DNA from: Euprymna scolopes
Lineage: Eukaryota
Assembly (NCBI GenBank): GCA_053919585.1
Contig: CM132802.1
Reading direction: 5' to 3' (one strand)
DNA length: 64,000 nucleotides
Position numbers and translations under genes: made by a program. Under the pieces are notes generated by a model, which made no database searches, was not told the origin of the DNA, and worked only from the letters and a program-made list of their open reading frames with translations. The first letter of the stretch is position 1, and each line of letters opens with the position of its first letter. Below, in pieces: positions 18,920 through 63,306 of this stretch.

Positions 18920-19051
18920 AGTCTCCACCTGTTGCTGAAGTGAGCCCTTTGATTACGAAGACAGAAACAACGATAATTACTGAAGAAACTACTCAAACAA
19001 TTACCGACAGAAGAGTAGACAAAGAGACTACTCAAACAGCTCCCTCGGAAG
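18920..19051 (+). CDS. 132-nt symmetric (phase 1-1) T/E-rich exon; extends to 19200 if the donor is not used
   Basis: Long pyrimidine tract tctccctgtttccttccctAG (AG 18918-19). Encodes ESPPVAEVSPLITKTETTIITEETTQTITDRRVDKETTQTAPSE. Candidate donor GAAG|GTGGGG at 19051/52, phase 1. Confidence 0.75.
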
Positions 19052-19200
19052 GTGGGGAACCCGCACAATTTGAGGATTCCAGCATGCAGACCTTCCTCTT
19101 GACCATGATAATGGCAATGATGTTGATACGATTCATGGCGTGGCTCTTAAGTTTTGGTTGCTGTTTTTGGTGTTGTTTCTTCTGTTGTCTTTGGCAGTGA
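19052..19200 (+). CDS. Putative alternative terminal extension encoding a hydrophobic, Cys-rich C-terminal tail
   Basis: In-frame continuation GGEPAQFEDSSMQTFLLTMIMAMMLIRFMAWLLSFGCCFWCCFFCCLWQ-TGA; visibly more GC-rich than the bulk intron. Confidence 0.5.
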
Positions 19201-20681
19201 GAATTGGGGGAACAAAGAAACATCAAACCATCCAACAACGGCTCATCTGATTGCTGTCCCCCCAAAACGATATGCATGGCATAATTCAAAGAAACAAAAC
19301 CATCAGGCTAACAATATTTTTGCTTATTTTTAATTTTTGTAAAATTACTTATATTAAAAAGCTGTTATAACCCCAGGAATTTAAGTAAAGGAAAGTTTAA
19401 ATTAGGAATTCTGTTGAGTTAGATGTTCATCTCTTTCTCTAACATTTGCATTTTGTCCAAAAGAATTATGTTTTATGCTTTAGATATGCTGAATTAATAT
19501 TTCATTTTTCAAAGAAATTCTTTTTGATTGTATAAAAAATAGATCTGCAGTATTTTTTAATTTAAGTTTAAAAAGACCCTCAATTTTCGCTCTTGTATGA
19601 CTGCTGTTTTTTCTTTGTATTTTTCTGAAAAAGCATCAGTTTCTTGCAAGTTAGTTTATGCTTTACTCTCATAAAATACTCAAGATCTTCATGCTATGAA
19701 CTTGCTTTAAAATAATGTTTACTTTTGATGACAGTTCAGAGTTTTAGATAAAGTAGATGCTAATATTCATTTGAAGCTTTGGTGTATTATTTATTCAACT
19801 ATATATTAAAAATCTATTTCAACTGACAAAACACTTTCTATAATAATACAGATATGGTTCATTGTGAAATGATATAGCTTATTGTGAACAGGAAAATTAA
19901 GTGTTTCATTTTAGATTTTTATTTTATTTATATAATTTTGAAACATAGTGTTACAAAAATAATGGTTATACTATATTTAAGACATCCATTTATAAACTGA
20001 ATCAGTTAAGCAAATAAATATATATTATATATTATTTCTAAATGTTAATTTTCATAGTCAAGTACTTAGAAAGACTTTTATTATTTTATAAATAGGTACA
20101 AGCTAAAACAAACTCATTTGCGTAAATTAAAATCTATTAGCAAAATAATTTAGAAGAATAAGAATCTTCTAGTATAAATTAGTATATTAGAATCTTCTAT
20201 GGTGATTATTTAGAATTTAATTTATTTATTCATTTTATGTGAAATGATTTTTTTTGTTTTCAACTGGGGTTATAACAAACTTTGTTAGAAGCAGGTGGCC
20301 TGATATTATGACAGTAAAGTATTGGCTTTGTTATTTCATAAGTAATGCTGTTTATAAATCAAAGTAAATTGAATCGAATCAAAGAATTATTTCTGCAAAC
20401 CTGTCTTTGGTTCAGCAGCAATTTGTACATTTGAATAGAGAATGTTTAAATAAATGAATTGGATTTATCATAATTATTGCTTTTTTGTGTCATGAAGTAT
20501 TTGAGTGGTGCAGTAACTAATGTTTGGAAGGCAAAGGGCATGATATTTCCTTCTATTTTTCAAACTAGGCTTCATTACAGACATACTTTGTTGAATGCTG
20601 CTTTTTATATACTAGATTGCATATTCATTGAACTATATGTTCTTTTATGATGTATTTGAAGTGAATAAAACGTCAGTAGGT

Positions 20682-21099
20682 GATATATAAAAGTGAACGT
20701 GTGTGTGTGTATGTGTGTGTGTGTACATTTCCCTACGCAATAACTCTGTCAATTTTTAGTCTACAGACTCGAAATTTGATATACAGGGTACTGAGATTTG
20801 GGAAAATCGACGTGATCGGTTTTCGGCCAGAAATTTGGCGATCAAGGGGTCAAAGTTCAACGATTTGACCTTTAAGAACTCTACGAAACTCCTCCGACAA
20901 TTTTGGGTCTAAACACTTGAAATTTTAAATATAGGTTCATTGGACATGGATCTAACTTAATAACTTGATTTGAGCCCAAAACAATAAATTTAAAGGGGTC
21001 ATAATAGGGTCAAAGTTAAAAAAATTGACCCTTTTTTTTTTTTTTTTTGCTCAACATACATCTCCAAATACCCGGGCAACGCCGGGCACCCATGCTAGT
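20682..21099 (+). mobile_element. Complete non-autonomous Helitron (family B)
   Basis: 5' atatataaaagtgaa plus (GT)n microsatellite; 3' hairpin CCCGG-gcaacg-CCGGG followed by gCTAGt. Inverted copy at 37681-38045. Confidence 0.8.
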
Positions 21100-22688
21100 A
21101 TATATATATAAGTGGATAAGTTAGTTTGTTTATTAGCAAGGTTAATATTAAAATACCCTTTTTATATATTATATACTATTAATTAGCATTATTGGAAAAA
21201 GTGCTTGGATTTTAGTATTACTTTTTATTTGGAATGCAATTATAAAGGTGTTGTCATTTATATGTACTTACAGAAATCAGCCGGAATGTATTGAATATTG
21301 TACATTTATTACTTGTTTTTAAAAATCTTTTTGGTTAATCTAGTTGTAATACTATTTCACTGAAATTTGTATATGCACACATACACATATATATGAATAT
21401 TGTTATACTATATTCAATTTATATCGAAAGAATAATTACATAACCTAAATATGAACTAGAATAATACCTGTCGCAAGACGGGTACAAACAATATCTAAAT
21501 TCATTTATTTTTTTCTTTTTGGAGAGGTACACTCTTTAAATGGTAAAGTTTACAAACAAAAATGTGCTCATGTTACTCATCACGTTGCCTACAATACATA
21601 TTCTATAATTCACTAATAAGATTATAATTTTTGGAATAATCAGATTAAATAATATGGTTGAGGATGAACTTATAGCTACTAGGATTTTGACAGGACTATC
21701 TAATTGATTAGGCCTCTCCAAACTCCCATTTAGTGAAAGTAAGAGTCAAAGTAAAAATTGGCTCAGTCACCGGGATTCAGTCCTGAAGCATCATGAATTG
21801 CCACCCACGGCCAACAAGTAGCCCCGTTTTCGGGAAGAGAAGAGCGTTACCTCTCTGCATAGGGTTGAAATGAATGAATTTGTGGTCATGTCGACAAGGT
21901 AGCCATGCTTTAAGTAAACAATATAACCATGTTAAACATAAAGATAATAGTTTAAAATTGTTACGGCAATGTAAACCTCAAATCTCTTATATTCAGTGTT
22001 GTAGCCTTGCAGGCTAATAATAATCAAGACAAAAACATTGGTATGATAAACAAAAAGCATATCAACAAAACTGTATTACAGAAATACACATCATAATTCT
22101 GTGGCCATAACTCGCTGCCACAGTGTTTATATTTATATCTATTGTTTTTGGGTAAATCCATTATTCCTGAAAGGGTAAATCAGCTAACCCCAAAATAAAA
22201 ATAACTATAATATAATCAAAATACATCATCTAAGAACATAGGAAAGTAAATGTTTCATTTTGCAAATGTTTTTATGTTCAATGAATATGTTGTTTATTAA
22301 TTTTCTTTTTTATTGGTGATTATTACTTTTGTGAAACTTTTTTTGTCTAGATAACTTACATTAAGACTATTCTTAGATGCACTGTCCAAATATTGATATG
22401 CACATTGGCACAGATTTTAGTACCTGTCATTTCTCCAAGATCACCTGCTTCTAATGTAATTCCCAATGCATGATAAACCTGCTGTTTATATGACATTATC
22501 ACCAAAATATTCCTATTTTTACTTTCCATTTTCCCATGTTACTTTTGCATGTTTCTCTGTATTTGCTTAATGAATATGGACATAAGCTTGCACTTGATTT
22601 ACAGATAGATTGTTAATTAATTTTTTTTGTTTAGAAAAATATGTATGCAGTCAAAGTTATGTTCTTGTTTATCTCCCCTTGTAGCAAC

Positions 22689-22883
22689 AGTAATCATAAA
22701 AAGAAAGCATCAGTCATATGACTGATTATGACTTACATACAACTCCTCTTTGTGAGCTTCTCCCCTCCTCCCACGACTTATACTTTATGTTATTCATATT
22801 GTGATGTCACTAACACAAACATCTAGTCATATATTTATGACTAGTCATATCTATGACTGGTTCTACTTTCAAATAACTATTAC
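22689..22883. mobile_element. MITE-like palindromic element with nested AGTCATA/TATGACT inverted motifs
   Basis: catcagtcatatgactga ... tagtcatatatttatgactagtcatatctatgactgg. Confidence 0.45.
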
Positions 22884-24519
22884 AGTATATTGTTTTAATA
22901 AGTTCTTCATGTACATGCACACTTTGTTTCTGATATCATTCCAAAGATGACATGAGCAAATTATTCAGCTAGTCATTCATTAATCGACATCTTGAATTTT
23001 AAAACTTTTTGTACATTCTACATGCAGACATTTAAATAATTTCAGCCATTTTAAAAAAATAAGTGTGAGTATTTCAGTGTTTTCTTTCCAACTAAAGGAT
23101 ATTTGATAACAGTCTACCTAAAAATATCTGTTACAGGTAAAAAAAAACAAATTTCCTTCATTTATATTTTTGGTAATTTCAAAAATTACAATTCTTTTAT
23201 CTTGCCTTTAATTCTTGTTTCTCAATATACATTTGCTACTAGTTAAAATGCACTTTAAACGTTTCATTGAAAATTGTTTTTGTTTTGTCATTGTCATTGT
23301 ATCCACATGTATTTGAATCCAAATGTTATTGTAGCCACATGTATTTGTATCCAAATGTTATTGTATCCACATATATTTGTATCCAAATGTTATGTTTCAT
23401 CTCATATTGCCATTCTGGTCATCTTACAATATAGTTAACAGGCAAGAAACCGAAAAGAAAAAAATGCAACTAATAATTTTAAGAAATAGAATTTAAATTT
23501 AATTTTCTATGCTTTTAAAGTGTGGAAAATGTTTATAAGATTTATTTTCTCTGAATTTGTAATTATTAAGTTGACTTAGTGAAACACAAACCAAAAGAAA
23601 AATGGTAATCGATTTTTTTTAGAAGTTGTCGCTTAGTTTGGGATTATTTTAGGCTGAAAAGATAGTAAAAATAAACAAATGACTTGCTCCGCTATTATCT
23701 CTAAGTTCAGAAAAAGGGTTTGTAACTGGGACTTCAGGTTAGTGATAGGCTAAGTTATTTATTTAAACTATTTTTTAAGCAATTAAGCACCAACAACAAC
23801 ACAAAGTTAAAACGACCATTTTGTTCCTTGTGTAGCAAAAGAGAGAGCTTTGAACAGATTCTAATTTAAAAAAAAAAAAAAATTCAAATCATTAAAAGCA
23901 TACAAGTCGGTAAAAAATTTAATTTTAATGTGTTTCATAAAAATTGTTTGTTACGTTTTTATTTCATTTTTTTTTTTAAATATCTCAGTTAACTAGATTG
24001 TAAGATTACCTTCATTCCTTTTCTTTCCGTAGTAAACCATTATTTATGTTGATTAATCCTAGCATGTATTTGTTTATCCTCTGTTTTATTTGTGTCATCC
24101 ATACTTTTTATAAATGTATATTTCCCGATCTCAGTGATTCCTGCGATCTTTACTCATCGTAAGTTTTTCTCATCATTCAACATCATCAGCCATTTAATAT
24201 GCGATTTTATGCTCATTAGTCCGCTACACTAATACGCTAGAAATTGCGACAGTGACTCACTGACTGACCTATTGACGCCACTGTTCCGTTGGTACTGTAT
24301 GCCATACTTCTATTTTGCTGTAGTTTTGCACAATTAAACATGGCTGCTTGCAATTTTGCACCTACACAGCTACCTCACATGTAGACCTACACGCTTGCTT
24401 TTTAGTACTCTGGGATTATGGCAGTCATCTACCTATGAGTTTTAATAAAGATAATCGAAAGTTTATTTAATCATACTATAGTCCATTAAAAACAGTCTGT
24501 ATTAATCCATAAAGTACAT

Positions 24520-25070
24520 TATATCTATCTTTATAAAGTTAAATATGTGCATATGTTTGCATAATGCATTAAAGTTAAATATGTGCATATGTACAGCATT
24601 ATAGAACTCATTCGTAAACTTATTAACTGATCGTGAATTTTAGAACACAAATGCTAGCAATAAAAGTGGTTAATATGGGCTATGCTAAGTTTAGTATACT
24701 TTATATATCAATGAATTCCTAAAATTTAAGTTTCTTTGGGGTATTTTAAAGGGTTTTAGGAGGAATAGTATTGGCACAACTCTCTCATTTGAAAATGCAG
24801 ACATATCAGATTTGCATGGGATTCGATCGATAATCATAAGACACCAATTAAGTAAAATTCCCTAAATTTCAATTTCTTCTTAAAACTTCTAAAATTTAAG
24901 CCTTAAATTTTAGACATTTTCTGAAATCAAAATCATGAAAGAGATTTTTTATCAAAATTAGAATAACGATTCTAGACATAAGGTTTAGTATAATTATATT
25001 TTTATTTTAATCTTCATAAAAATGGTGCAAATCTGTTATGTTCGGAGAATTGATTTTATTCTCCTGGGAT
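24520..25070 (+). mobile_element. Helitron-like family A copy in the opposite orientation
   Basis: Reverse complement of the 6030-6570 block; starts atctatctttataaagttaa. Confidence 0.65.
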
Positions 25071-25507
25071 GGGTATTCTTCTAATTTTTCTGTTGGCCAT
25101 TTTATTAATTATATTTATAAATACACCTTCAAAATAACTGAATTACATTTTTTGAAAATCAAAAATACATAAAAGATATTATAACCCCTCTTATCATAGA
25201 CAAATTAAAAATCAGAGATGATATAATTTGTTGAAGATGAGAACTCTATCAAACCATGAAAGTTCCATTATTAAGCATTAACCCAAAAAGGTAAATTACT
25301 TATTCATAAGAAATACAAACCCAAATCTTGTTAGACTTTATTTTTTATTATGATTTATTATAACCGTCATAAACGGCAATGATATGCAATACAGATATAA
25401 AATAATATTACAATATGATAATATTACAATAATTTTTAGAATGATACTTTAAAATCAAAATGATAATACGAGAATTAAGCTTGTATAAAGCTTGTTCTGA
25501 TTTGTTA

Positions 25508-25811
25508 TATTGGGTTCACAACTAAATTCCCGCTATTTTAAAATTTAAATTGAAAAAGTTTAACAAAAAGTAGTAATAAATTAATCAATGTTCAGTAATA
25601 TTTCCAATACCTCGTTGGTTGAAAGCAAAAATAAATAAATAAAAACAAATAGAAGGTGTCGAAAATATTATTTTTTCTTAACTTGATTCCATTTTAATTA
25701 TTTGAAAATAAACTGAAATTAATTGAAATTAACGTTAAAAAGGAAAATATTCGAAAACACAATAGATTTCAAAATAAAAAAAATGGTGGTAACTTAGTTG
25801 CCTACCCTATA
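25508..25811. mobile_element. mariner-type MITE with TA target-site duplication
   Basis: TA-TTGGGTTCACAACTAAATT...AACTTAGTTGCCTACCCTA-TA; about 30-bp imperfect TIRs. Confidence 0.7.
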
Positions 25812-28800
25812 TTTTAGATAATGTCATTTGCATAAAGATCTTTGAAGGATTAAAAAGAGCTTAGATATTGGCTTAGATGTTAGTTTAGAGAAATTCAGTT
25901 TTATTTCAAAAGATGACTGCCACAATTATCTCAGGTAGAACACAAGTCCCTGCAATACCAGAATTAGTTCTTTTCATTATTGCCTTTTAGAAATGCCAAA
26001 GGAAATATGTATGATTGATATGGTGAAGATGTAATAATGTTACTGCACAATTTGTATGATATGGCGTGAAATGTTTGTACAAAACGAAACAGCTTTATAA
26101 ACCAGTGTGATATCGCATATCGCTTATCACATTTTTATAAAATATTTAAAATTCTACATAAAAACTGCAACTTCTTATATGATGGTCATCAGAAATTGTT
26201 GCCTTTCAAAATTGCTTGGAAATTAAATCAATTTGAATTTTTCTGATCACTAATTCATTTTAAAATAAACTTTAAAGTTAATAATTCTTAATGTACTACA
26301 CATTTCAAAATTTGTCAATATCTAAAATTCAATGTAAAAATTTGAAATTTTTGATATATCAAAAGTTGTTGCTCTTCCAAATTGTCTAGAAATGAAATTA
26401 ATTTCAAATTGATTTCAAAACAAAATTTAAAGATAATAATTTTTAATTTACTCCACATTTAAATATTTCTATACAGCTGTTTCTATGTTTAAATGTACAA
26501 CTGAAAAAAAAGAGAAAATGATAACTTCAATATGTATTGAATGGGAAGAATTGGTTTTGAGGATTGAAATATGACAGCTTCACCACATTGGGGACTCATT
26601 ACGAATATAAAATCTATTTAAGAATATTATATTAATTATCAATCATTTATTAATAATAAATTTTAACTGGTAACATATTTCCTTTCTTATGATAAATTTA
26701 TTTTATTAAAAAAAACTAGCAATTAAATTATATATGAAATACATTCATTCTAATCTGATGCATTATTGGTAATGAGTTCCTTATTATTTTCAACAGCCAT
26801 TTTTATTTGTTATAAATACGATTTTATAAAATAGTTATAGAAAATTATAACTTTTAATTTTTATCGACGTAATTGTGAAAACTTGTGCTGTATTAATTAT
26901 TTACAATATAAATCTAAACATTAATTTTTCAAAATTGCATCCAATGTTGCATTTGTGTCAAACGTGATATTCTAACTAAAATAAATTAGGATCAAAGTGT
27001 GATATCTGTTCTGCCTAGAGATCGTACAATAATATTCTGGTATCTCTAGTCACACTAGACGTTTATTAAATGGAAACTGGAAATAAACTCTTGCAACAAG
27101 ATATATTTTAAAACTACATTAACCATAGTACTTAGCTAAATATGCTTCCGTTTAAACAAAGTGATTTAGTGAGGTCTGTATTCACGACAGACGTCCATAC
27201 AATTGAAATATGTCAGAATTCCTACAAGGGTTTTGGAAAAAGATTCCCATAACCAAATGTATTTTAAAACTTCATTAATCAGAGTAGTTAGAAGGACACA
27301 ACTTTGGAATTTTTATGAGTCTCGCTAATATAATTCTGCTTTATAAAACTGAATATTTTATTCTTAATAGAATTTTATGATAGACAAAAGCATATTGGAA
27401 CCTTTGAAATTATAAATTAATATTTTTTTACTTTATCTGAGACAATAAAGATGGCTGCTGAATATAAACTTATATTTGTGGTGATTCTGCATGATTATCA
27501 GTGGATCAGTAATTATACCAGGAGCTCTGAAGTGGAAGACATTGTGGAAATAAACGTGCAGGTAAGATTGATGGCCCTTTTTTAGTTTAAGGTGGTAACT
27601 TATCATATCAAGTGAGATAACTTTTATATGACTTCTTTTTCGATTGTTTTTGTCAAAATTTGATTTTAAAAAGGGCATTATTTCAAATTGATATTTTTTA
27701 TAAAAACAACAAAGATTTTTAAAAAATTATTTTTAAATGAAGAAACCCTTTTTATTTGTTAGTTTAAGGAAAATAAGTTTTTCATTAGCAGAAACAAAGA
27801 AAAAAACAATATTAAAAATGCAATTTAATTAGCTATTGGAATTTAATGTTTTCGAATTCATAAATCATAAAAAATGTCAGACTTAAAATGTTTTTGTACT
27901 ATGAAGGAATATATTGTGGACCATACATTCATTCCAATCATATTTCTTAACATTTTTATTTGAATTTTAATCTTAAAAAACAAAATTTAATTCTTATCCA
28001 CTCAAACAAGATAGATTACCACTAAATGGGGGTACTTTGATAGTGGCTAGATTTATAGGAGGTAAACCTGGTGAAGGATTGGGCAGCAAGGTGTTTGCTC
28101 ACATTACATATAAATTTCTCCATTTTGGTATGGTTGAGGAAACAGGAAGAAAAAGAAGGAAAGAAGCTATTCTGACATCTAGAGATTTCTATAAAGAAGA
28201 GGTCTGAATTTACTGCTACTTAGGTAGATCAGAGATATTCACTTGAGGAGGGGAATACAATATTTTTAATTGTTTTTTAATATGAATTTTGTTTAAATCT
28301 TTGTTAAAAAAAAATCAAGTAAATTTCTCATAATTATTAATTAGAGGTAAGAAAAGTTTGTTGATATGACAAGTTGCCACCTAAAACTGCAAAAGAGTCA
28401 GATTGCTGAACATGGAATGCTTACAGAATGCAGGTAATTAAAAGTGACATACATCCCAAATAGCTTTGCAAATCTAGCAATGTAGTCAATCATCATGTTT
28501 TCATTTTTCATTTTACTTAATAGTTCATTCTTTATTTATTTTATTAATAAGAAGAGATCAAAAACTCTTTTTTGAGAAGAAAAGATAAAAAAATCATTTG
28601 AGAAACATTTCTTATACAAAATGGTTAAAAATATAATCTTGATCAATGTTTGTATAATATTTATTTTACTGTATCAGTATATTGCAATCGTGCCTAAATG
28701 CATAAATATTAATAAATAATGATACTGATAAAACAAGTCCTCATTAGATCACTGAAGTTAAATGGCATTGAACAATATAAGATGGATGACCATTTGTGAA

Positions 28801-28879
28801 TTCTAGGCACTATATATTGGAGAATAGTGAAACATCCCTGCAAAAAATAATACAGCCCTAAAGATACTTTTACTAAGTA

Positions 28880-29370
28880 TTTCAGTATAGCATGCTAATC
28901 CACATGTATTCACAAAATGGAAAATCACCCGCTAAGCAGAAGTTCTGTTCTCAATCACGTGGTGAATCTTTTGCAAGAGTATGCAATTTGAGCCACATTA
29001 CTAGAATGAGTTCAGAGTTTAGTGACGTGGGTGGCCACTGAGCTTTATACAAAGTTTAACAAACAATGGCTAGAGTTTCTCAACTTGTACTCGCTAGAGC
29101 CTAGGTGGTTGCATGATGATCGCATCCTTATCTTTAACATGTGTGGCAACTATAATGTGCTGTGTGACCTTATCTTTGCATTGACTCTGTGGAAAGGGAT
29201 TCAGGGAAACTCAAGTAGCTATACTTGAGACGATTTGGACTGAATCATTAGAAAGTTTCTTTTTTGATTTAGGTCGCTGAGTTGTGGAACAAACTCCCAA
29301 AAGCCAACAGCGTTTCAAACAGTTACAGGCATAGCTGAATGCATCATGGCTGTCTTTGGATAATTACACT
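28880..29370 (+). mobile_element. CR1-clade LINE ORF2 3' remnant
   Basis: LNLYSLEPRWLHDDRILIFNM (cf. LxLxSLExRRxRGDLI) and RVAELWNKLPK (cf. RVVxxWNxLP). Confidence 0.7.
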
Positions 29371-29544
29371 TCCATAACTCACTTTTACAAGGCTCTAAAT
29401 CTGTTCTAATCTTTAGCTGATATATTGACTTGAATTCTAATTCTGAGATATTATTGTACAAATTATAATGCAATATTTAAAACTTATTTGATTTATAAAT
29501 AGATTGATTATTTGCTAGAACTGATGAGAAGTAATATGCATGAT

Positions 29545-29765
29545 TTAGATCATTCTTGAATATTGGAATAGCAGATTAACACATTTATTATTACTATTAT
29601 TTGGATTATTCTTGAATATTGGAATAGCAGATTAACACATTTATTATTTGGATTATTCTTGAATATTGGAATAGCAGATTAACACATTTGCTATTAATAT
29701 TACTTGGATTATTCTTGAATACTAGAATAGCAAATTAACATATTTACTATTACTATTATTTGGAC
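29545..29765. repeat. ~50-58-bp tandem repeat, four copies
   Basis: attcttgaatattggaatagcagattaacacattt repeated. Confidence 0.85.
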
Positions 29766-30055
29766 TACTGTTCTCATCTTGGATGTTATTCTTTCATAGT
29801 TTCAGCTGATGTAACCTCTGACCATCTCCAGGATATCTTGTCAAACTCTGGAATCTTTATGTTAAACTTGGTAATATGTACTCATTTGTGAATCAAACCC
29901 TTTACTTAATTCATGAAGGTAAATTGTTCTTGTTCTGTCAGCCATGACCGTGTAGAGGTCTTAAGTAATTCTCAATTATATTCTTAGTATTGCCTATACT
30001 GAGGATTGAACCATCAATCTTCGGAAGACTATCACTTGACACAGATTATTAGTTT
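29750..30055 (-). mobile_element. Penelope-like terminal-repeat fragment
   Basis: Minus strand CCTGGAGATGGTCAGAGGTTACATCAGCTGAAAC; colinear with 14400-14700. Confidence 0.55.
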
Positions 30056-30504
30056 ACAAGGCTCTAAATCTGTTCTAATCTTTAGCTGATATATTGAATT
30101 GAATTCTAATTCTGAGATATTAATGTACAAATTATTATGCAATATTTAAAACTTATTTGATTTATAAATAAATTAGTTTATCAATTCTGCTACAGGTTTA
30201 TGTAGTTACATCGGCTAAAATGTGAAAATAACATACAAAGTGAAAATAGTAGTCTGAATAATCCAAATGCTACAAATTATAAACCCTTATCTAAAAAATT
30301 ACGAAGCATGATGAGAAATAAGTTTTATAAATTTGTAAATGACATTTTTTCATCTGTATTATATTCCTCTTAGTCTATTATGTTAGAAATAGAATCTTTG
30401 TCTGTCACGTTTAGATGAGAAATATAAGTTTTAGACGTATTCATCAAACACATAAACGGACTTTAATCTGATAATGATGATGCGTCCATGAGCTCAGATG
30501 ATTC

Positions 30505-50519: not shown

Positions 50520-50760
50520 GTAAGCATCATTATAACCTCCTCTGGACGGCTGTTCCAGCAATCAGAATGCTACCGTTCTTCTGTTGGTATGAAAGCAATG
50601 ATGGTACATCTTTTGTGGGTGGCCATGGAGACTGCAACTAGGCGTTAAGGAGAAAAGCTCCTCAAAAGGCAGATTCATATTACGGTTGATGATGATGTAT
50701 GAATCAGGTCCTCTTGCATCTTTTGTTGCTCAAGTGAGGACAGATATAGTTTTTAAGTTG
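50520..50760 (-). mobile_element. CR1-clade LINE 3' remnant
   Basis: Minus-strand LSSLEQQKMQEDLIHT followed by WNSRPE. Confidence 0.55.
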
Positions 50761-51357
50761 TTCTATATTAAATATTTATTCTTTCAACACAAATAAGTCA
50801 CAAATGAGTTTGATGCTTCTTTATTATTACTCACAAGTGAAAATTACACTTTACGTAAACACACGTTGCTGTACTTACATGTCATGCTGGAATAAGTATC
50901 CACACCAAAAATTAGAAAAAATGACTGAGTAAAAGATTAATTACAAATAAAACTCAATTTTATTGTAAAATGCAGTTTTATCGTATTACATTGTTCTTTT
51001 TTCTTGCTTAAATGGAAGAATGTCTTATCTCCCTGATTTATGAGAACTTCCAGTACTTCTGCTGTTATGAATGGCAGATCAAAAAATATGATAAGACCAA
51101 TGTTTATTTTTAATAAAAAGTTCTACATGATCTTCTTTTTTTATTATTTCTTGTTGAAGATAATTTTTTCTGCATGACAAATTAGTACATGAAAGTATTT
51201 CTACTTGAAATGCGATTTTCAGTTGTGATTAATAGTAAAGAACCACCTTTATTTCCCAATAGTATTTTCTTTAAAATGTCGTTATTAGTGACGATTACCA
51301 ATAAAACTTTGTAATTCATTTAAAGCAATTCTAATGAAGAATTTTTGTTTGTTGCAG

Positions 51358-51639
51358 GTAAGGAACCGACAATTCTTAAACATTTGGTTGATATTGAATC
51401 TTTTGAAGGAGAACCTGCATATTTTGAATGCCATGTTTCTGGCAATCCAATGCCAGAAGTGAAATGGTATTGCGATGATATGCCTATTAATGAATCTGTA
51501 TTTGAAGCCATTACATTGGAAGGTGGCATTTGTCGCTTGATCATTCAGGAGACATTTCCTGAAGATGAAGGCGAATACCAATGTATCGCCACAAATGAAT
51601 ATGGTTCAGCAAGCACAGTATGTGCTCTGTATGTCTCAG
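51358..51639 (+). CDS. 282-nt symmetric exon encoding one Ig I-set domain
   Basis: Acceptor tttttgtttgttgCAG, donor TCAG|GTATGT. KEPTILKHLVDIESFEGEPAYFECHVSGNPMPEVKWY...FPEDEGEYQCIATNEYGSASTVCALYVS is a canonical titin-type I-set domain. Confidence 0.93.
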
Positions 51640-54004
51640 GTATGTCGTGTCTTGACTTTTCATCATTTTCCAGCAACAATTTTTTTTTAAATATATGAAA
51701 CAGGTGTTAAAAACGTTAAATATAAATTGACTACAAGTTTGAAAGTTATCCATTACAGAATAAAATTCTGCAATTTGATATTTTAAAATAACAGTTTGAA
51801 TGCAAAAATGCGGTAAACCCAATTTGCTTAAATTGAGACATTATGCATTAAAAACACAAATATATAAAATCTTTATTTGGACAAAAAGTTTATTTTAATT
51901 GAAAGCAAAAATAAGTTATGCCAGTGTCATATCATCTAAAAACATGACTTGGAAGTTTTGAACTGTAATGGTTTTTGTAGTGATAACTTTGCAATTTTTT
52001 AAATGGCGTTTATCGCGTTTTATGTTTGAACACTTCAAATTTTGCATGCAGTGTTGTTTTTAGTGTTTTATTGATTCATTTTTAAAAACCTCTCTTAATA
52101 ATTCTCATCTGTTTTCAGAATGTTTAAATGTTCTTTTTATATGACTTTTCAACCTCAATATTATAATTTTGCCTATCCCAATAACCTTTGACCAATTATA
52201 TTATAATCCCATTGTTCAAACAATTAATCACAATTTGAAAATCAAAATACTTTGGAGTATTTAAATCAGAAAATTTTTTACCTAATTTCCGATGCCAAAA
52301 ACGATTCTTTTAATTATTATTTTTTTTAAAACTTAATTTTCTTTTGCTAGTACTAATGATACTATAATAAATATTTATTGATTTTAAACTACCAACAAAA
52401 CTAAAACTTATAAATCATAATAACGAATTTAGATAAAAATGACACCGGAAATATGGCCTGGTAAAAATAACACGAGCAAAAATGGCACGAGTAGATCAAT
52501 AGGAAAAATGGCACAAGTAAAAAGTATAGATAAAAATCCCATAATCAGTTTATAAAAATCTTGAACACAAGGAAGGGGAAACATTAAAAAGCTGGTTAAA
52601 TTAAAAAGAAAATGTTATCTACATTTACCCCAATGCAAACTTTGAGGTACATGAATACATGGCAGAACAGATAATGGTGATTTTTATACTAATAAAGCAC
52701 CATTTATCAAGGCCATTTATCAAGGCCCAAAATCCATTTAAGCATAAGGGTTAATAGAGTGTTAGCTGAATGATAAACAACACTATGAGAAGATTAGATA
52801 ACGATGGCTGGAAATGGTAGAATCTGATTACTTAAAGATGACAGATTGGCAAGTGTTTGTTAACATTTGACTTTAAAACGGCTATGTTGGAATCAGCAGG
52901 GAAGCAGTCTCATGGTATTGTTCGACAGAGTGGAAGTTAATATTGGACTTGAATAAGAGTGTTAAGTAACAATCAGTTCTAAGTGACAGTCTCTTCTGGA
53001 GGTTGAAAGTTCAATCCTTATTACAAGCACTACTAACTAAAAGTAGAATTAAAATTATTTTAGACTTCCATCTGTTTATGGATAATAAAGTAACAATTTA
53101 TTCGATCGATTAAGTGAAGATTTCAGTTTGAAATTTTGTAGTAATTTCTGATTTCAACATAAATATTCTCTAACTTGACAAGAAACATCTAAAATAAGGA
53201 CAGCAGTCCTAATAATCAATCCTTATTTAAAAAATTTCAAAACTTAATACAACTATTTTAAAAATTTGTACCAACATGCAGAAATTTAAATGTAACGTCA
53301 ATAAGCGTTTTGTTGCCTAACTCGTCACTTAGGTTGCTCCCAACCCCTATAAATCTGGTCCCCAAAACAACAACCCCACATACTTCACTGGCATATATAT
53401 ATATATATATATATATATACTTTTTTGGAATGGACAAAGTAAACAAAATATTTAGGACACCCCCAAAAACTTAATCATCAGTCTGTATTGTTTCCTTTTA
53501 ATTTAAATCAATAAATATATTTCAAGTGCATTAGAAAACAATATTAACGTTTGGATTGGTTTTTTGTAATTGTTAAAAAAAAAATTGCAGAAAAATATAC
53601 AAATAAACAATGCTAAATAACCATTTTCAAGAATTTTTTCATAATAATATTTTTACTTGCCTTCCTAGGAGGGAAGAATTATACATAAGGTCGGTTTCTA
53701 ATGTGGGGAAATCCAGCTCCCTCTAAAATGCAGCACTCTTGATTGTTATAAATATAAATATGTCTCAGTCCAAAAGGATTTCTCTTTCACTGACCGACGA
53801 CTGAAAAGATGTTGTACAGTATCAAAACAGATACTACACTTTGCCCCCAAGTGTTAGAAGGTGTACGTTTATTTTTCTTTAGTAATATGCTATGTCACAG
53901 CTCAATCTTGTTATGCCAGCAATTAAATACTCCATTATATGATTATCATTTAATTGGTCAATGGTTACATTTGCTTTGTTTGACACAAAATTTTAAGACT
54001 TGAT

Positions 54005-55071
54005 AATTAGGTCTTTGAATCCACAGATGTTTATTTCATATTTTTCTTTAAATTTTGTGATCTGAAAAATCATGTTTCGTTATTTTCAAAGATTTATATA
54101 CATTATAAATGTATACATATATGTTATAAATGTTTTTATACATTCCTTTACATAATCAAGAAATATTATTTAATTTTCTAAATGAATTTATTATTGATAA
54201 AATACAATCTAATATCTATTACACCGAGTTTAATTACAATGAATATCTGTTTTTGTTTAAGGCTAATAGTATTATTATTACATGAATTTTTTTCATGTAA
54301 ATATATCTGTTTTTTTTTTCATAATTATTAGTCAAAGTATTAACATCAATGAAATTACTTTATGCAGATGTAAATAAATAGTTCCAGAAAAAGATTTGAA
54401 AAAGATTATTTTATTTGCTTTATAAAACTTTTACTTGAATTAGAATTAACGATTTGAATTTTAAATGTGTTTAATGTTTATTTTCTTTATTATTTCTTTC
54501 AAAAATATGTGCTATGCATGTAAAAACTTACTAAGTCATAATAGTAATTAATAAATAAGTCTTTTTAATTCACAGATATTTATTTTATATTTTTCTTAAA
54601 ATTAGTTTTCGATCAGAAATTCACTATTTTCAAATATTGTATATATTCAATATGAATACAAATGTTTTATTTCTTATTAAATTGATTCATATAATAAATA
54701 AACATTTCTTTTTATTTGTCTAAATTGATTTGTTATTGATAAAATTTAATCTGACACCTATTAAAGCAAGGGTTATTAAAATGAATATTTTTAAGGGCTG
54801 ATAATAGTAACATTATTATTAAATAAATTTTTAATGAAAATATCATATATGCTTTTATTTCATAATTATCAGTATTTAAATAAAATAGTTTTATGTAAAT
54901 TAATATTTAAAAGAAGTTAGAAAATGTTATTTTCTTTATTTTCTGAAAATACTTCTTGAATTAGAATTAACGGTTTTAATTTACAATAAAAGTAATGTTT
55001 ACTTTTGGTTGTATCAGTTCTATTTAAAACCATATCTGCTGTGAACGGTAAAAGCAATAATAGTAATTAAT
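54005..55071. repeat. Diverged ~530-bp tandem duplication just upstream of the giant exon
   Basis: cacagat.tttattt.atatttttctt at about 54022 and 54571; cttgaattagaattaacg twice; both copies end taatagtaattaat. Confidence 0.8.
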
Positions 55072-55225
55072 TTGTATTTCCAGTAATGCATTGTGTATAT
55101 GTATATGTATACATATATTTTCCTATGCTGGTATATTTATTCTTGATGGGATATAAATTGAAAATTAATGGATTCCACATGTTCTTATTTGTTATTTTTG
55201 CTACCAAATATTTGATTTGTAATAG

Positions 55226-58200
55226 ATCAATTGCCGATTGATGATGCTGATGATGCCATCTGCGAATATAAAGAAACTGGAGAATCGAAAGAAGAAAAAG
55301 CTGAAGAAGTTTTTGCGCAACAACCTGTCTCCCGTGAGGAAAGCCAAACCAATTTGTTCTCAGCTGATATTGAAACACTCCCTATTTCGGAGCAAGAAAT
55401 AATTCTTGACCAATCTTCATCTGGTGCTGCTGTCGTAAAACCCATTTCAACAGTTATAGAATCAAAGCAAATAAATGTACATGAAGAAAAGCCACTCATT
55501 GCTAAAGTCGAAGAAAGATATCCTGACACAATTGAAGATGAAAGTGAAGATGAACTATTTGAAGAGATTCCAGAGAGTGTCAAAACAGTTAGCATCCAAG
55601 AAACTATGCAAATTGAAGTTACTTCAGAAAGAACAGAATCAGATGTAAAAGAAGAAGAAGAATCATTGTCAGAAGAAGAATTCTATGAAGTTTCATCTAC
55701 TGAAGTTGAACAAACCAAGTTTGAAAAAGTAAAACCTAAAGATAGCAAAATTGATATAACTGTTACATCAAAATCACTTGTTGCTGAAGGCACTACACCA
55801 GTTATTGAAGAAATAACAGAACATATTACAGAAGAATGTGAAGTCAAACCTCAAACTGAAGAAGTACTCATATCAGAGATGGAACAGATTGTTGTACCTA
55901 GAGCAGTGGAATCTTTTGTTCCTGAAGGAGAAGAAGTCAGAAAAGAGATGTCAGTCATCACGCTGAAATCTGACAAGGAATTAAAACCAGAAATCTCAGA
56001 AGTAATGCCTGAAGTTGTAAAAGACATATCTGCTATTTCTGTATTAACCATTGCTACTGAAAGCAAAGATACTACCGCTATTGAAAAAGTCACAGATGTA
56101 ATTCCAGAGACTGAAGTAAAACCAAAAGATCATGATGTCATAACCACTGAAAAGTTACAAATCACAGTTAGTAGTAGTTCACCTAGTGTCTCCAAAGAAG
56201 AGGTGGAACAAATAACGGAATCTACAACTCTAGAAGTAATGCCACTCAAAGAAACGGTTCCACAATCAGAAGAAGTACACATTCAGTTATCTAATATATC
56301 TATTGCTCCTACGAAGGAGTCTTCAGTTGTTATTAGTGACGAAATAAAAACTGTGGAGCAAGTGTCAGTCGTTGCTGAAACTGAGGTTCCACAAGTTTCT
56401 GAATTTGTTATTCCTGTTGTTGAGCCAGCTAAGATTATATCAGAGATTACAACTGATGTTAAAGAAAGTGAAGAAGTTGTTTTTGATGAAAAGGTAAAAG
56501 ATGTTCCTTCACAAATTACAATCGATATTGAATCAAAGAAAATAAGTCCAGAAAAACAGAAACCATTAATCAGTAAGGTAGAGGAAACTTTCATACATGA
56601 AGATGAAGAAAAAGATTCTGGTGATGAAGTATTTGATGTACCTTCTGAGAGTGTGGAAAATGTTTCTGTGCAACAGATTAAGTCTGGAGACATTCAGCTC
56701 TCTATCAAATCTGCTATGGTTGCAATGATAGATGAAGCTAAAGAGATACAAGAAAAGGATGAAGTTTCAGCATTAACACCTGCAAAGGAAGTAACTGTCG
56801 GTCAAGAAAAGGTTATTTCTGTAATTGCTAGTGAAAAGACAACAGACACTGATGCTATGCAAACTGTAGTTTCAGTTAAAAAGGGTTCTTTGTCAGAAGA
56901 AGAATTCTATGAAGTTTCATCTACTGAAGTTGAACAAACCAAGTTTGAAAAAGTAAAACCTAAAGATAGCAAAATTGATATAACTGTTACATCAAAGTCA
57001 CTTGTTGCTGAAGGCACTTCACCTGTTATCGAAAAAATAACAGAACATATTACAGAAGAATGTGAAGTCAAACCTCAAACTGAAGAAGTACTCATATCAG
57101 AGATGGAACAGATTGTTGTACCTAGAGCAGTGGAATCTTTTGTTCCTGAAGGAGAAGAAGTCAGAAAAGAGATGTCAGTCATCACGCTGAAATCTGACAA
57201 GGAATTAAAACCAGAAATCTCAGAAGTAATGCCTGAAGTTGTAAAAGACGTATCTGCTATTTCTGTATTAACCATTGCTACTGAAAGCAAAGATACTACG
57301 GCTATTGAAAAAGTCACAGATGTAATTCCAGAGACTGAAGTAAAACCAAAAGATCATGATGTCATAACCACTGAAAAGTTACAAATCACAGTTAGTAGTA
57401 GTTCACCTAGTGTCTCCAAAGAAGAGGTGGAACAAATAACGGAATCTACAACTCTAGAAGTAATGCCACTCAAAGAAACGGTTCCACAATCAGAAGAAGT
57501 ACACATTCAGTTATCTAATATATCTATTGCTCCTACGAAGGAGTCTTCAGTTGTTATTAGTGACGAAATAAAAACTGTGGAGCAAGTGTCAGTCGTTGCT
57601 GAAACTGAGGTTCCACAAGTTTCTGAATTTGTTATTCCTGTTGTTGAGCCAGCTAAGATTATATCAGAGATTACAACTGATGTTAAAGAAAGTGAAGAAG
57701 TTGTTTTTGATGAAAAGGTAAAAGATGTTCCTTCACAAATTACAATCGATATTGAATCAAAGAAAATAAGTCCAGAAAAACAGAAACCATTAATCAGTAA
57801 GGTAGAGGAAACTTTCATCCATGAAGATGAAGAAAAAGATTCTGGTGATGAAGTATTTGATGTACCTTCTGAGAGTGTGGAAAATGTTTCTGTGCAACAG
57901 ATTCAGTCTGGAGACATTCAGCTCTCCATCAAATCTGCTATGGAAACTGCTGTTCCTAGTAAACAGGATTCTTTCTCAGATGAAGAATTCTTTGAAGTTT
58001 CATCTACTGAAGTTGAACAGACCAAGTTTGAAAAAGTAAAACCTGAAGATAGCAAAATTGATATAACTGTTACATCAAAATCACTTGTTGCTGAAGGCAC
58101 TACACCTGTTATTGAAGAAAAAACAGAACATATTACAGAAGAATATGAAGTCAAACCTCAAACTGGAGAAGTACTCATATCAGAGATGGAACAGATTGTT

Positions 58201-61200
58201 GTACCTAGAGCAGTGGAATCTTTTGTTCCTGAAGGAGAAGAAGTCAGAAAAGAGATGTCAGTCATCACGCTGAAATCTGACAAGGAATTAAAACCAGAAA
58301 TCTCAGACGTAATGCCTGAAGTTATAAAAGACGTATCTGCTATTTCTGTATTAACCATTGCTACTGAAAGCAAAGATACTACGGCTATTGAAAAAGTCAC
58401 AGATGTAATTCCAGAGACTGAAGTAAAACCAAAAGATCATGATGTCATAACCACTGAAAAGTTACAAATCACAGTTAGTAGTAGCTCGCCTAGTGTCTCC
58501 AAAGAAGAGGTGGAACAAATAACGGAATCTACAACTCTAGAAGTAATGCCACTCAAAGAAACAGTTCCACAATCAGAAGAAGTACACATTCAGTTATCTA
58601 ATATATCTATTGCTCCTACGAAGGAGTCTTCAGTTGTTATAAGTGACGAAATAAAAACCGTGGAGCAAGTGTCAGTCGTTGCTGAAACTGAGGTTCCACA
58701 AGTTTCTGAATTTGTTATTCCTGTTGTTGAGCCAGCTAAGATTATATCAGAGATTACAACTGATGTTAAAGAAAGTGAAGAAGTTGTTTTTGATGAAAAG
58801 GTAAAAGATGTTCCTTCACAAATTACAATCGATATTGAATCAAAGAAAATAAGTCCAGAAAAACAGAAACCATTAATCAGTAAGGTAAAGGAAACTTTCA
58901 TCCATGAAGATGAAGAAAAAGATTCTGGTGATGAAGTATTTGATGTACCTTCTGAGAGTGTGGAAAATGTTTCTGTGCAACAGATTAAGTCTGGAGACAT
59001 TCAGCTCTCTATCAAATCTGCTATGGTTGCAATGATAGATGAAGCTAAAGAGATACAAGAAAAGGATGAAGTTTCAGCATTAACACCTGCAAAGGAAGTA
59101 ACTGTCGGTCAAGAAAAGGTTATTTCTGTAATTGCTAGTGAAAAGACAACAGACACTGATGCTATGCAAACTGTAGTTTCAGTTAAAAAGGGTTCTTTGT
59201 CAGAAGAAGAATTCTATGAAGTTTCATCTACTGAAGTTGAACAAACCAAGTTTGAAAAAGTAAAACCTAAAGATAGCAAAATTGATATAACTGTTACATC
59301 AAAATCACTTGTTGCTGAAGGCACTTCACCTGTTATCGAAGAAATAACAGAACATATTACAGAAGAATGTGAAGTCAAACCTCAAACTGAAGAAGTACTC
59401 ATATCAGAGATGGAACAGATTGTTGTACCTAGAGCAGTGGAATCTTTTGTTCCTGGAGAAGAAGAAGTCAGAAAAGAGATGTCAGTCATCACGCTGAAAT
59501 CTGACAAGGAATTAAAACCAGAAATCTCAGAAGTAATGCCTGAAGTTGTAAAAGACGTATCTGCTATTTCTGTATTAACCATTGCTACTGAAAGCAAAGA
59601 TACTACCGCTATTGAAAAAGTCACAGATGTAATTCCAGAGACTGAAGTAAAACCAAAAGATCATGATGTCATAACCACTGAAAAGTTACAAATCACAGTT
59701 AGTAGTAGTTCACCTAGTGTCTCCAAAGAAGAGGTGGAACAAATAACGGAATCTACAACTCTAGAAGTAATGCCACTCAAAGAAACGGTTCCACAATCAG
59801 AAGAAGTACACATTCAGTTATCTAATATATCTATTGCTCCTACGAAGGAGTCTTCAGTTGTTATTAGTGACGAAATAAAAACTGTGGAGCAAGTGTCAGT
59901 CGTTGCTGAAACTGAGGTTCCACAAGTTTCTGAATTTGTTATTCCTGTTGTTGAGCCAGCTAAGATTATATCAGAGATTACAACTGATGTTAAAGAAAGT
60001 GAAGAAGTTGTTTTTGATGAAACGGTAAAAGATGTTCCTTCACAAATTACAATCAATATTGAATCAAAGAAAATAAGTCCAGAAAAACAGAAACCATTAA
60101 TCAGTAAGGTAGAGGAAACTTTCATCCATGAAGATGAAGAAAAAGATTCTGGTGATGAAGTATTTGATGTACCTTCTGAGAGTGTGGAAAATGTTTCTGT
60201 GCAACAGATTCAGTCTGGAGACATTCAGCTCTCCATCAAATCTGCTATGGAAACTGCAGTTCCTAGTAAACAGGATTCTTTCTCGGATGAAGAATTCTTT
60301 GAAGTTTCATCTACTGAAGTTGAACAAACCAAGTTTGAAAAGGTAAAACCTGAAGAAAGCAAAATTGATATAACTGTTACATCAAAGTCACTTGTTGCTG
60401 AAGGCACTTCACCTGTTATCGAAGAAATAACAGAACATATTACAGAAGAATGTGAAGTCAAACCTCAAACTGAAGAAGTACTCATATCAGAGATGGAACA
60501 GATTGTTGTACCTAGAGCAGTGGAATCTTTTGTTCCTGAAGGAGAAGTCAGAAAAGAGATGTCAGTCATCACGCTGAAATCTGACAAGGAATTAAAACCA
60601 GAAATCTCAGACGTAATGCCTGAAGTTGTAAAAGACGTATCTGCTATTTCTGTATTAACCATTGCTACTGAAAGCAAAGATACTACGGCTATTGAAAAAG
60701 TCACAGATGTAATTCCAGAGACTGAAGTAAAACCAAAAGATCATGATGTCATAACCACTGAAAAGTTACAAATCACAGTTAGTAGTAGTTCACCTAGTGT
60801 CTCCAAAGAAGAGGTGGAACAAATAACGGAATCTACAACTCTAGAAGTAATGCCACTCAAAGAAACAGTTCCACAATCAGAAGAAGTACACATTCAGTTA
60901 TCTAATATATCTATTGCTCCTACGAAGGAGTCTTCAGTTGTTATTAGTGACGAAATAAAAACTGTGGAGCAAGTGTCAGTCGTTGCTGAAACTGAGGTTC
61001 CACAAGTTTCTGAATTTGTTATTCCTGTTGTTGAGCCAGCTAAGATTATATCAGAGATTACAACTGATGTTAAAGAAAGTGAAGAAGTTGTTTTTGATGA
61101 AAAGGTAAAAGATGTTCCTTCACAAATTACAATCGATATTGAATCAAAGAAAATAAGTCCAGAAAAACAGAAACCATTAATCAGTAAGGTAGAGGAAACT

Positions 61201-63306
61201 TTCATCCATGAAGATGAAGAAAAAGATTCTGGTGATGAAGTATTTGATGTACCTTCTGAGAGTGTGGAAAATGTTTCTGTGCAACAGATTCAGTCTGGAG
61301 ACATTCAGCTATCCATCAAATCTGCTATGGAAACTGCTGTTCCTAGTAAACAGGATTCTTTCTTGGATGAAGAATTCTTTGAAGTTTCATCTACTGAAGT
61401 TGAACAAACCAAGTTTGAAAAAGTAAAACCTGAAGATAGCAAAATTGATATAACTGTTACATCAAAATCACTTGTTGCTGAAGGCACTTCGCCTGTTATC
61501 GAAGAAATAACAGAACATATTACAGAAGAATGTGAAGTCAGGCCCCAGACTGAGGATGTCTTGATATCGGAGATGGACCAAATTGTGGTACCTAGCAAAA
61601 TGGAAACTTTTGTTCCTGAAGGAGAAGAGATGAGGAAAGAAATTTCTCTCACAATAAAGTCTGCTGAAGAATTTAAACCGCAGTTTTCACAAGTGATGCC
61701 TGAAGTTGTAAAAGACATATCTGCTATTTCTGTATTGACAATTTCTACTGAAAGCAAAGATACTACGGCTATCGAAAAAGTCACAGACGTAATTCCAGTG
61801 ATTGAAGGAAAAACCAAAGCTGATGAGTTTGAAGTCCGACCACAAACTGAAGAAGTCTTGATATCAGAAATGGAACAAATCATTTTACCTAGTGCAGCGG
61901 AATGCCCTGTTAGTGAAAGCAAAGAGAAACTTGTTCCTGCTTCTTTGGAATATGATTCTAAAGAAGTTTTGCTTGAACCATTTAGAGTCGATATCATATC
62001 TGAGATAGGTGATAAATCTGATATCTTTTCTGCACAAGAATCAGTTATTCCTGTGGATGTGAAACTTCTTGTAACTGAAGAAAGCGAAATATCTCTGATT
62101 GAAGAACAGTTACCATCTCCAAAAGAAGGCAGCATTGAAGATCTTTCTTTCTCTGATCAATCTTTAAGTCTATCTCCTTGTGAATCTGATTTGCCAGCTG
62201 ACAAAGCTCTCGTGAAAGACATTGAAGTAAGCCAAACATCACTCGCAGAGAAAGTTCTTGATGAAAAAGCAGTGGAATTTGAAAAATTCTCTCCATCTAT
62301 TAGTACTCCTGTCGTAACAGATGTCGGTACTGATGAGTTAATTATAGAAACAGAAGATTCTAGAGAAACACTTATTGATTCTTCTTCAGATATTTCATCT
62401 GAAGACATCGTTGGCATTCAGGATATTTCCACGGAAATTGCAACTTCTGGTGACGTCATATCTGAACATGATAAAGTTACAGTATCTCAGCTTGTAATTC
62501 ACGATGGACCACAAGAAGTGCCTGAACAAAAGTTATCTGAAGAGATCGAAGATGAGTCCATATGTGAGTCCTATGATTTAGGAATTTCTGCTCTTGAACA
62601 AGAAACTCAACCTAGTGTTGATGATATTGTGATTGAGCACACCAGTACGATGAAAATTACACAAGAATCTGATATAATTGAAAAACATTCTGAAGAATTA
62701 TCTGAGAAGATGTCTTTGGCAGAAGCTAATAAATCTGTAAAAGAAATAGCTATAGCTGATATTCCAGTTGATGAATCAAAACCTGAACTAGTCGTACAAA
62801 TAACTCCTAAAATAAAAGAAGAAGTAACCGCATTGATTCCTAAGGTACCTGTTGAACATCCAGAGTCTGAAATGCAGCTAACTCTTGATGTAGTTAAACC
62901 ATCTGAAGATACACAAATAGTCGAAAACATCGAACAATTGGATAGTTCGGTAGAGATTACATTCGAAGACGACACAGCAGCATCACCTGAAGTCATTGAG
63001 TCAACAATTATTCTCGCTGACAAAAAGGATAAACCGAAGAAAAAGGGAGTGGTATTTGCTGAGACTGTGGTTTTTGAAGAAGTAGGTGAGAGTCTAGATA
63101 CGATTCAACCAACTGTATCATGCGCAGGAGACCTCTTTGTTGAATCAAAAGAGAAGCTTGCTGGACCGAAGGACGTTCAGTTATTGAAAGAAGACGATTT
63201 AGGTATTTGGAAGGGCGATATGTCGGCTAAATGTATGCTAATGCACTTGCTGCTAGTGCTGCTGTTGCTGCTGCTTGAATGTATTCAAAGCGTCACTTCT
63301 ATGTAG
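55226..63306 (+). CDS. Giant exon of the titin-like gene: acidic low-complexity region with 361/408-aa tandem repeats. Phase-1 donors at 63085 and 63202; stop at 63304-63306 if unspliced
   Basis: Acceptor tttgatttgtaatAG (55224-25) in phase 1; about 8 kb without a stop. Donors GTAG|GTGAGA (63085/86) and TTAG|GTATTT (63202/03), both phase 1. Confidence 0.92.
55666..61900 (+). repeat. Coding tandem array: units of 1224, 1083, 1224, 1083 and 1080 bp plus a diverging partial sixth unit
   Basis: Unit starts at the (L/F)S(E/D)EEF(Y/F)EV motif: 55666, 56890, 57973, 59197, 60280, 61360. The antisense ORF offsets in the track show the same spacing. Confidence 0.95.

Follow-up and report, generated by a model that had tools for sequence, protein, structure and literature searches.

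The stretch of DNA analysed here (the window, 64,000 nucleotides of Euprymna scolopes; GenBank assembly GCA_053919585.1, contig CM132802.1) appears from its sequence to cover the middle of a cephalopod titin/sallimus-like gene. Two exons of this gene carry candidate splice donors beyond which the reading frame stays open and closes on a hydrophobic C-terminus. These endings, called tail 1 (ending at position 19200) and tail 2 (ending at 63306), may provide membrane-anchored isoforms of an otherwise elastic protein. The window is AT-rich (G+C 0.25-0.36) and is crossed by a single gene on the + strand, in which every splice site is phase 1, in all five splice-site pairs. Its features are listed below; a slash within a splice-site sequence, or between two positions, marks the boundary at which splicing occurs or could occur.

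3..423, + strand: end of a PEVK-like and I-set immunoglobulin (Ig) exon, with donor C/GTAAGT at 424 (Pfam I-set, E=3e-15; titin I-band Ig domains are the nearest solved chains).
15393..15524, + strand: small exon of 132 nucleotides (nt), phase 1-1, rich in charged residues, which precedes the tail-1 exon (splice sites read directly).
18920..19051, + strand: tail-1 exon, part 1, an acidic and Thr-rich linker of 132 nt from the acceptor to the conserved AG/GT.
19052..19200, + strand: tail-1 exon, part 2, with a D-x-S-M-Q-x-F motif, a membrane-type helix, a Cys/Trp-rich end and TGA.
19082-19086, + strand: GCATG within part 2 of the tail-1 exon.
19201..20035, + strand: presumed 3' untranslated region (UTR) of the tail-1 mRNA, with a putative 3' end (ATTAAA at 19353 and 19805, AATAAA at 20013).
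51358..51639, + strand: phase 1-1 exon with an I-set Ig domain, which would come next in the coding sequence of a transcript that bypasses the tail (Pfam I-set, E=1e-22).
55226..63085, + strand: body of a giant PEVK-like exon, about 2,620 codons in which E, V, S, I and K are abundant.
63086..63202, + strand: interval from the first to the second candidate donor of the giant exon.
63203..63306, + strand: tail 2, an end of 33 residues with a Leu-rich hydrophobic 18-19-mer, then 6-9 residues and TAG.

The label "titin-like" seems fair because the Ig domains are nearest to those of the titin I-band, the giant exon is PEVK-like and the exons are phase 1. Among solved structures, both Ig domains are matched best by Ig chains of the titin I-band (E=2e-26 and 9e-51), the latter being titin I65-I70 for the exon at 51358-51639, and the long PEVK-like stretches between Ig domains and the phase 1-1 modules are those of titin and sallimus genes. 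Any kettin-type array of Ig domains and linkers near the N-terminus, and any distal Fn3 or kinase parts, would lie beyond the window. The exon ending at 423 is orthologous to the PEVK and Ig exon ends of three related loci (L005, L006 and L010). The small exon at 15393-15524 has a coding score above that of every intron open frame, and comparable small exons lie ahead of the tail exon in L006 and L010. Both this exon and part 1 of the tail-1 exon (18920-19051) are exactly 132 nt long and phase 1-1.

The 2,691 codons of the giant exon's open frame encode 17% E, 13% V, 12% S, 9% I, 9% K and 5% P, and the exon has no match in Pfam. From 55629 to 61919 it is made up of about 5.5 tandem units, alternating between 1,224 and 1,083/1,080 nt (360-408 residues) and sharing 86-100% identity, which is a very recent in-frame amplification of a spring segment. 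The body of the exon is devoid of any membrane-like segment, its best 19-mer scoring +10.4 on the Hessa scale.

Direct reading of the sequence bears out the open frames from which an earlier note on this DNA had started. At the first site, AAG/GTGGGG at 19051/19052, the frame stays open for 49 more codons, up to the TGA at 19198-19200, and its end is hydrophobic and rich in Cys and Trp. The giant exon offers TAG/GTGAGA at 63085/63086 and TAG/GTATTT at 63202/63203, and its frame remains open up to the TAG at 63304-63306, with a Leu-rich hydrophobic end. The first Ig exon meets a stop two codons beyond its donor (R-K-stop), also as described there. A small correction applies to the boundaries of the tail-1 exon, in which base one is 18920 and the final base ahead of GT is 19051.

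Chance is a poor explanation of both open tails. In controls drawn from the introns of the window, 2.4% of the frames opened at GGT reach at least 49 codons and 0.4% reach at least 73, and a membrane-like 19-mer within the last 33 residues occurs in only 3-4% of the intron open frames of at least 33 codons. The G+C content stays at 0.43-0.45 throughout both tails and is 0.31 immediately past each stop.

Tail 1 belongs to a family. A phmmer search of 1.84 billion cluster representatives with the tail-1 exon returned 8 small open reading frames (ORFs; E 2e-14 to 7e-6), and a profile search yielded three further members. These ORFs are exons of eukaryotic contigs called by prokaryotic gene callers. 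The pattern common to the family is [LI]-G-W, a spacer of 4-8 residues, [DE]-D-x-S-M-Q-x-F, a hydrophobic stretch of about 20 residues containing a central Arg and L-A-W, and a Cys/Trp-rich end; the hydrophobic helix carries R-x-L-A-W and is followed by C-x-W-x-C. In five loci (L003, L004, L005, L006 and L010) the tail exon lies on the same strand as an I-set Ig exon and a few kilobases 3' of it. Three of them (L005, L006 and L010) have a giant PEVK-like and Ig exon upstream of the tail exon and a further Ig exon or giant open frame downstream: the open frame in L005 spans 3,676 codons, and the Ig exon in L010 is 50% identical to the one at 51358 in the window. At least four lineages besides this one therefore have the tail exon in an equivalent place, surrounded by Ig and PEVK-like exons, and its location midway along the gene is ancestral to these lineages.

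Both parts of the tail-1 exon are translated, because the ratio of nonsynonymous to synonymous substitution (dN/dS) is low in both. Among four related lineages (L006, L010, L011 and L013; six pairs) it amounts to 0.09-0.15 past the AG/GT (part 2) and to 0.10-0.58 before it (part 1). Tail 1 is therefore kept as an ORF in relatives, a test of conservation that the earlier note had named for both tails. In three of the six pairs the synonymous divergence of part 1 is two- to five-fold below that of part 2 (e.g., 0.16 vs. 0.60), which hints at exonic splicing signals; alternative cassette exons often show reduced synonymous change. Each lineage has a phase-1 acceptor candidate near the opening of the frame, with 60-90% pyrimidine in the preceding 20 nt, and the acceptor at 18920 is strong (pyrimidine tract 90%). 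It is highly probable that the translated products of this gene include one that ends in the membrane-type tail 1.

The predicted structure of this ending is simple. On the family alignment, AlphaFold2 gives a disordered first half and one continuous helix at residues 50-92 (43 residues), with a predicted local distance difference test score (pLDDT) of 83-97. In tail 1 and in all 10 relatives tested, the Hessa-scale sum of a segment of 19-21 residues lies between -1.1 and -5.2, and 1-19 residues separate this segment from the C-terminus; in tail 2 the sum is -0.5 and 9 residues follow. The transmembrane prediction that the earlier note had called for is thus favorable (negative on this scale) for both tails. 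Tail anchors possess one hydrophobic helix of about 18-25 residues within about 30-40 residues of the C-terminus, and such a helix is present. As modeled, the layout of tail 1 is that of a tail anchor, and its insertion into a membrane is predicted. Membership in the KASH (nesprin) family, whose luminal peptide has about 30 residues and terminates in PPPX, was considered and rejected: the tails end in ...CLWQ and ...SVTSM, 1-19 residues past the helix, and contain no PPPX.

Other searches added no members to the family. A word-index protein search with the tail-1 exon, by a tool whose length window leaves out long proteins, gave no match, and a DNA pattern scan of metagenome contigs gave 9 chance matches and no further lineage. 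Protein Atlas returned only low-scoring small viral or membrane proteins (best 0.58). The candidates P0002/P0020 were discarded as relatives, being an unrelated repeat protein whose match is confined to the Thr-rich linker. In L005 (9980-10552) the tail ends a much longer open frame, of 190 codons, preceded by PEVK-like sequence.

Two short elements of the tail-1 exon are conserved beyond what the protein requires. The first is AG/GT, located at the G of the G-W motif in 10 of the 11 lineages; nine read NTA GGT TGG, usually followed by C. The Leu/Ile codon of this motif varies in its first base (CTA, ATA, TTA) but never in its last, and Gly is always GGT, against background frequencies in these genes of 0.08-0.31 (xTA) and 0.37-0.55 (GGT). 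The second is a block 30-45 nt 3' of the AG/GT, which reads GAT-NNN-(A/T)GC-ATG-CA(G/A) and includes GCATG in 11 of 11 lineages. Its Ser codon is AGC in all ten lineages with Ser, against a background of only 7-17% of Ser codons, and the Cys of L002 is encoded by TGC (TGCATG). Because the other conserved residues of the same alignment (Phe, Arg, Ala, Leu, Cys) are free at synonymous sites, the constraint is local and acts on the RNA. Another GCATG, just 5' of the acceptor at 18920, is not kept in relatives.

In E. scolopes the Trp codon is now GGG, which turns the site into GTGGGG, and in a simple matrix AAG/GTGGGG is on a par with the constitutive donors of the gene. A role of the AG/GT as an internal acceptor is less likely, since only 35-60% of the preceding 20 nt are pyrimidines. 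Composite exons contain an internal 5' splice-site motif ahead of in-frame coding sequence and a stop, and this arrangement is found at 19051/19052. According to RBFOX splicing maps, a site shortly 3' of a 5' splice site promotes its use; the conserved (U)GCAUG lies closely 3' of the candidate 5' splice site, and suggests RBFOX control of the splice choice. (U)GCAUG has been described as the Rbfox motif of both flies and vertebrates (PMC8742874). The joint pattern of AG/GT and GCATG matches that expected of a composite internal/terminal exon whose donor is weak and regulated, and the preservation of AG/GT at synonymous positions fits the phase-1 donor that the earlier note had placed here. The odds that this AG/GT is a used splice donor appear to be even.

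Transcription was assessed as the share of sampled words of a region that is present in RNA runs labeled mollusc or invertebrate, including oligo-dT and polyA libraries. The region 18700-19400 has 0.83-1.00 of its sampled words in such runs; because the runs contain these words, transcripts pass 19052 and extend at least 200 nt past the stop of tail 1. For 63000-63999, the best oligo-dT runs contain 0.31-0.49 of the words, compared with 0.09 expected if the RNA ended at 63085. If those words were contiguous from 63000, the RNA would reach about 63490, just short of a TATAAA variant hexamer near 63510-63520.

The best explanation as a whole is a composite exon that provides either an anchored or a long isoform, with a probability of roughly 0.5; the reading as a splice-versus-read-through switch is held with moderate confidence. 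The exon at 18920-19200 would act as an alternative last coding exon, with read-through and polyadenylation behind it. In the anchored isoform, the Ig/PEVK protein would end in a disordered linker and one long helix; its insertion into a membrane would be post-translational and would leave the spring in the cytosol. The AG/GT would be a 5' splice site that is weak and regulated. Splicing there would turn the first 132 nt into an in-frame cassette joined to the Ig exon at 51358 and would remove the tail together with its poly(A) site, giving a long isoform with the exon of 2.6k residues. The giant exon may repeat this logic, with a strong donor at 63086 and read-through to the second hydrophobic end at 63306. 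In this model we infer that the donors are used, that RBFOX is in control, that the tail is attached to the Ig protein and enters a membrane, and that tail 2 has a function. A more elaborate version, in which an RBFOX-gated composite exon switches the gene between a long elastic product and a shorter one that anchors itself, and cephalopods have added a second anchor on a recently expanded spring exon, resulting in two tether lengths, is tentative and on balance unlikely.

Several observations weigh against the composite-exon reading. The N-terminus of the gene, including any signal peptide, lies beyond the window. No annotated long protein with this tail was found among the cluster representatives, and such a protein could sit inside a cluster. 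The putative donor is weak in most relatives (GTTGGC), and L005 is devoid of AG/GT (CCC TTG TGG); it may have lost the internal splice site. The RNA runs that contain tail 1 also contain most of the approximately 220 nt of intron 5' of the acceptor (18700-18919). Likewise, the related contig L012, probably of a marine metatranscriptome to judge from its sample series, begins within the intron, 304 nt ahead of the exon, and its last bases, about 0.9 kb past the stop, are AATAAA. The RNA signal could thus stem from unspliced precursor or from a separate short transcript. At the second site, the hydrophobic core of tail 2 is a run of TTG/CTG/CTA/GTG, stop-free by nature, there is no GCATG nearby, and the tail-1 profile, run against the six-frame ORFs of the window and of all loci, recovered the known tail-1 exons only.

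These points feed several alternatives, of which the first concerns tail 2. The giant exon might always be spliced at 63086, or its read-through end might be fortuitous and unselected, so that tail 2 would not be a functional anchor; this is a serious possibility, somewhat short of an even chance. The donor at 63086 (TAG/GTGAGA) is the best, by far, of the 84 phase-1 GT sites in the giant exon. In some of its isoforms at least, the gene very probably runs on past the end of the window. The TTG/CTG/CTA/GTG repeats have no stops in any frame and raise the G+C content. A word-index search with the last 400 residues of the giant exon, in which long proteins are left out by the length window, found no relatives. 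In spite of an L-G-I-W motif and TAGGT, tail 2 is not a detectable paralogue of tail 1. Runs from organism D (perhaps a relative; 3.2-3.4 billion letters) contain 0.21-0.23 of the words at tail 2 vs. 0.67 at tail 1.

On the other side, 63088-63201 has a codon-usage score (0.34 per codon) higher than any of the 721 intron open-frame segments, and so scores as coding. A frame open for this length (0.4%) that also closes on a hydrophobic 19-mer (3-4%) has a joint chance of about 1e-4 per donor. The fall in G+C comes only past the stop, and oligo-dT runs contain as much as 0.49 of the 63000-63999 words where 0.09 were expected. Tail 2 is a used, functional anchor with slightly better than even odds. 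The proposal of the earlier note, membrane-anchored isoforms at two exons, consequently stands in part: tail 1 is a conserved, translated, membrane-type helix inside an Ig/PEVK gene, whereas no relatives of tail 2 were found in the searches above and it consists in part of a CTG-type run.

A second alternative retains tail 1 but denies its donor. The exon would be a plain alternative terminal exon, used or skipped whole, and the AG/GT would never be a donor; TAGGT and GCATG would then have another role in the RNA, such as exon definition or the tuning of the nearby poly(A) site through bound U1. The relatives' TAG/GTTGGC is indeed far from the consensus and L005 has none, and since all exons are phase 1-1, skipping of the whole exon would keep the frame equally well. 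This alternative is nevertheless doubtful: it leaves aside that AG/GT is kept at two synonymous positions in 10 of the 11 lineages, in the shared phase-1 frame, that the cephalopod donor AAG/GTGGGG scores like constitutive donors, and that part 1 is exactly 132 nt long, like the preceding cassette exon, with reduced synonymous change in three of the six pairs.

The intron-containing RNA is the starting point of a third alternative, in which the tail-1 exon is a separate short transcription unit with its own promoter in the intron, encoding a small membrane protein, or a peptide of 38 residues from an invariant Met, unattached to the scaffold. RNA runs with intron directly 5' of the acceptor, the 304 nt of intron and the terminal AATAAA of L012, and a Met that is invariant in 11 lineages are what such a unit would leave. 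It is disfavored, and indeed improbable, because the frame 5' of the invariant Met is conserved and without ATG. This frame is open and under purifying selection from the conserved phase-1 acceptor, at least 55 codons 5' of the Met, and with no ATG in frame ahead of it an upstream coding exon is needed. In unspliced RNA, many upstream ATGs precede the Met. Base -3 is T in L002, and a Kozak reading fails to explain the conserved GC before the ATG. The strand and the position within the Ig/PEVK gene are also conserved. The intron-containing RNA, present here and apparently in a distant relative, could be due to slow splicing ahead of an alternative last exon, or to an internal start site.

That both tails are chance open frames of AT-rich introns is hardly credible: such introns do yield Phe/Leu/Ile-rich frames, and read-through past the donor of the small exon runs for 35 codons with a short hydrophobic patch, but the family, synteny, dN/dS and predicted helix exclude chance for tail 1, and the joint chance given above speaks against it for tail 2.

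The composite exon proposed for tail 1 resembles the immunoglobulin mu switch, in which in-frame codons, a stop and a poly(A) site lie behind a weak internal 5' splice site, and the competition of splicing with cleavage decides on the anchor; use of the site is here proposed. The analogy with IgM drawn in the earlier note holds for this internal/terminal exon logic, but its polarity is opposite, since here read-through would give the anchored form. In addition, the anchor would be the C-terminal tail of a cytosolic giant protein and not the type I segment of a secreted protein.

Within the titin family, truncated isoforms arise from internal terminal exons in vertebrate titin (Novex-3) and in Drosophila sallimus (kettin). 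In these cases, too, a terminal exon used alternatively midway along the gene gives a shorter isoform without the distal spring. To our knowledge, the ends of Novex-3 and kettin are neither hydrophobic nor membrane-inserted. A literature search found no paper on a tail-anchored isoform of titin, sallimus or kettin.

Tail-anchored proteins share with the predicted isoform a single hydrophobic helix at the extreme C-terminus and a short luminal end. Among them, SLMAP, a muscle gene with two alternative tail-anchor exons, is like the present gene with its two candidate anchors. However, there is no sequence similarity, the cytosolic part is Ig/PEVK here and FHA/coiled coil in SLMAP, and the anchor is here a predicted one. 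Nesprins, too, are cytoskeletal proteins of great length whose C-terminus carries a membrane segment, absent from some isoforms; by contrast, the present tails have no KASH peptide and no PPPX, and the repeats are Ig/PEVK and not the spectrin repeats of nesprin. In vertebrates, obscurin and small ankyrin 1 link the sarcomere to the sarcoplasmic reticulum as two proteins joined by a binding interface. The proposed job is the same, the tethering of a giant sarcomeric Ig protein to an internal membrane, but here a single polypeptide would carry its own anchor.

Titin-family proteins are usually treated as soluble sarcomeric springs and rulers. If the composite-exon reading is true, the I-band filament of invertebrate muscle would be linked directly to a membrane by the anchor of one of its own proteins. 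This would bear on how the sarcoplasmic reticulum, T-system, nuclei or mitochondria are positioned on sarcomeres without the vertebrate obscurin-ankyrin link, and the candidate membranes for the anchored form are the sarcoplasmic reticulum, the T-system, and the mitochondrial or nuclear envelope, besides the sarcolemma proposed in the earlier note. The tail family would also represent a new, compact candidate targeting signal. As AG/GT and GCAUG are short elements, the proposed switch is directly testable. In current annotations the tail exon, which is missing from the cluster representatives searched, may be unannotated or hidden in minor isoforms.

Three minor observations concern the remainder of the window. 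An intronic minisatellite at 2181-3105 reads as repeated N-N-Q-L-H-S-L units in the + frame, is open on both strands and is probably non-coding. The Ig exon at 51358 opens with GTAAGG directly behind its acceptor (cag/GTAAGG; 51358-51365), and a 5' splice-site-like sequence is regenerated at the junction. Finally, two copies of an element of about 95 nt lie about 120 nt apart at 63530-63740, just past the presumed 3' UTR of tail 2.

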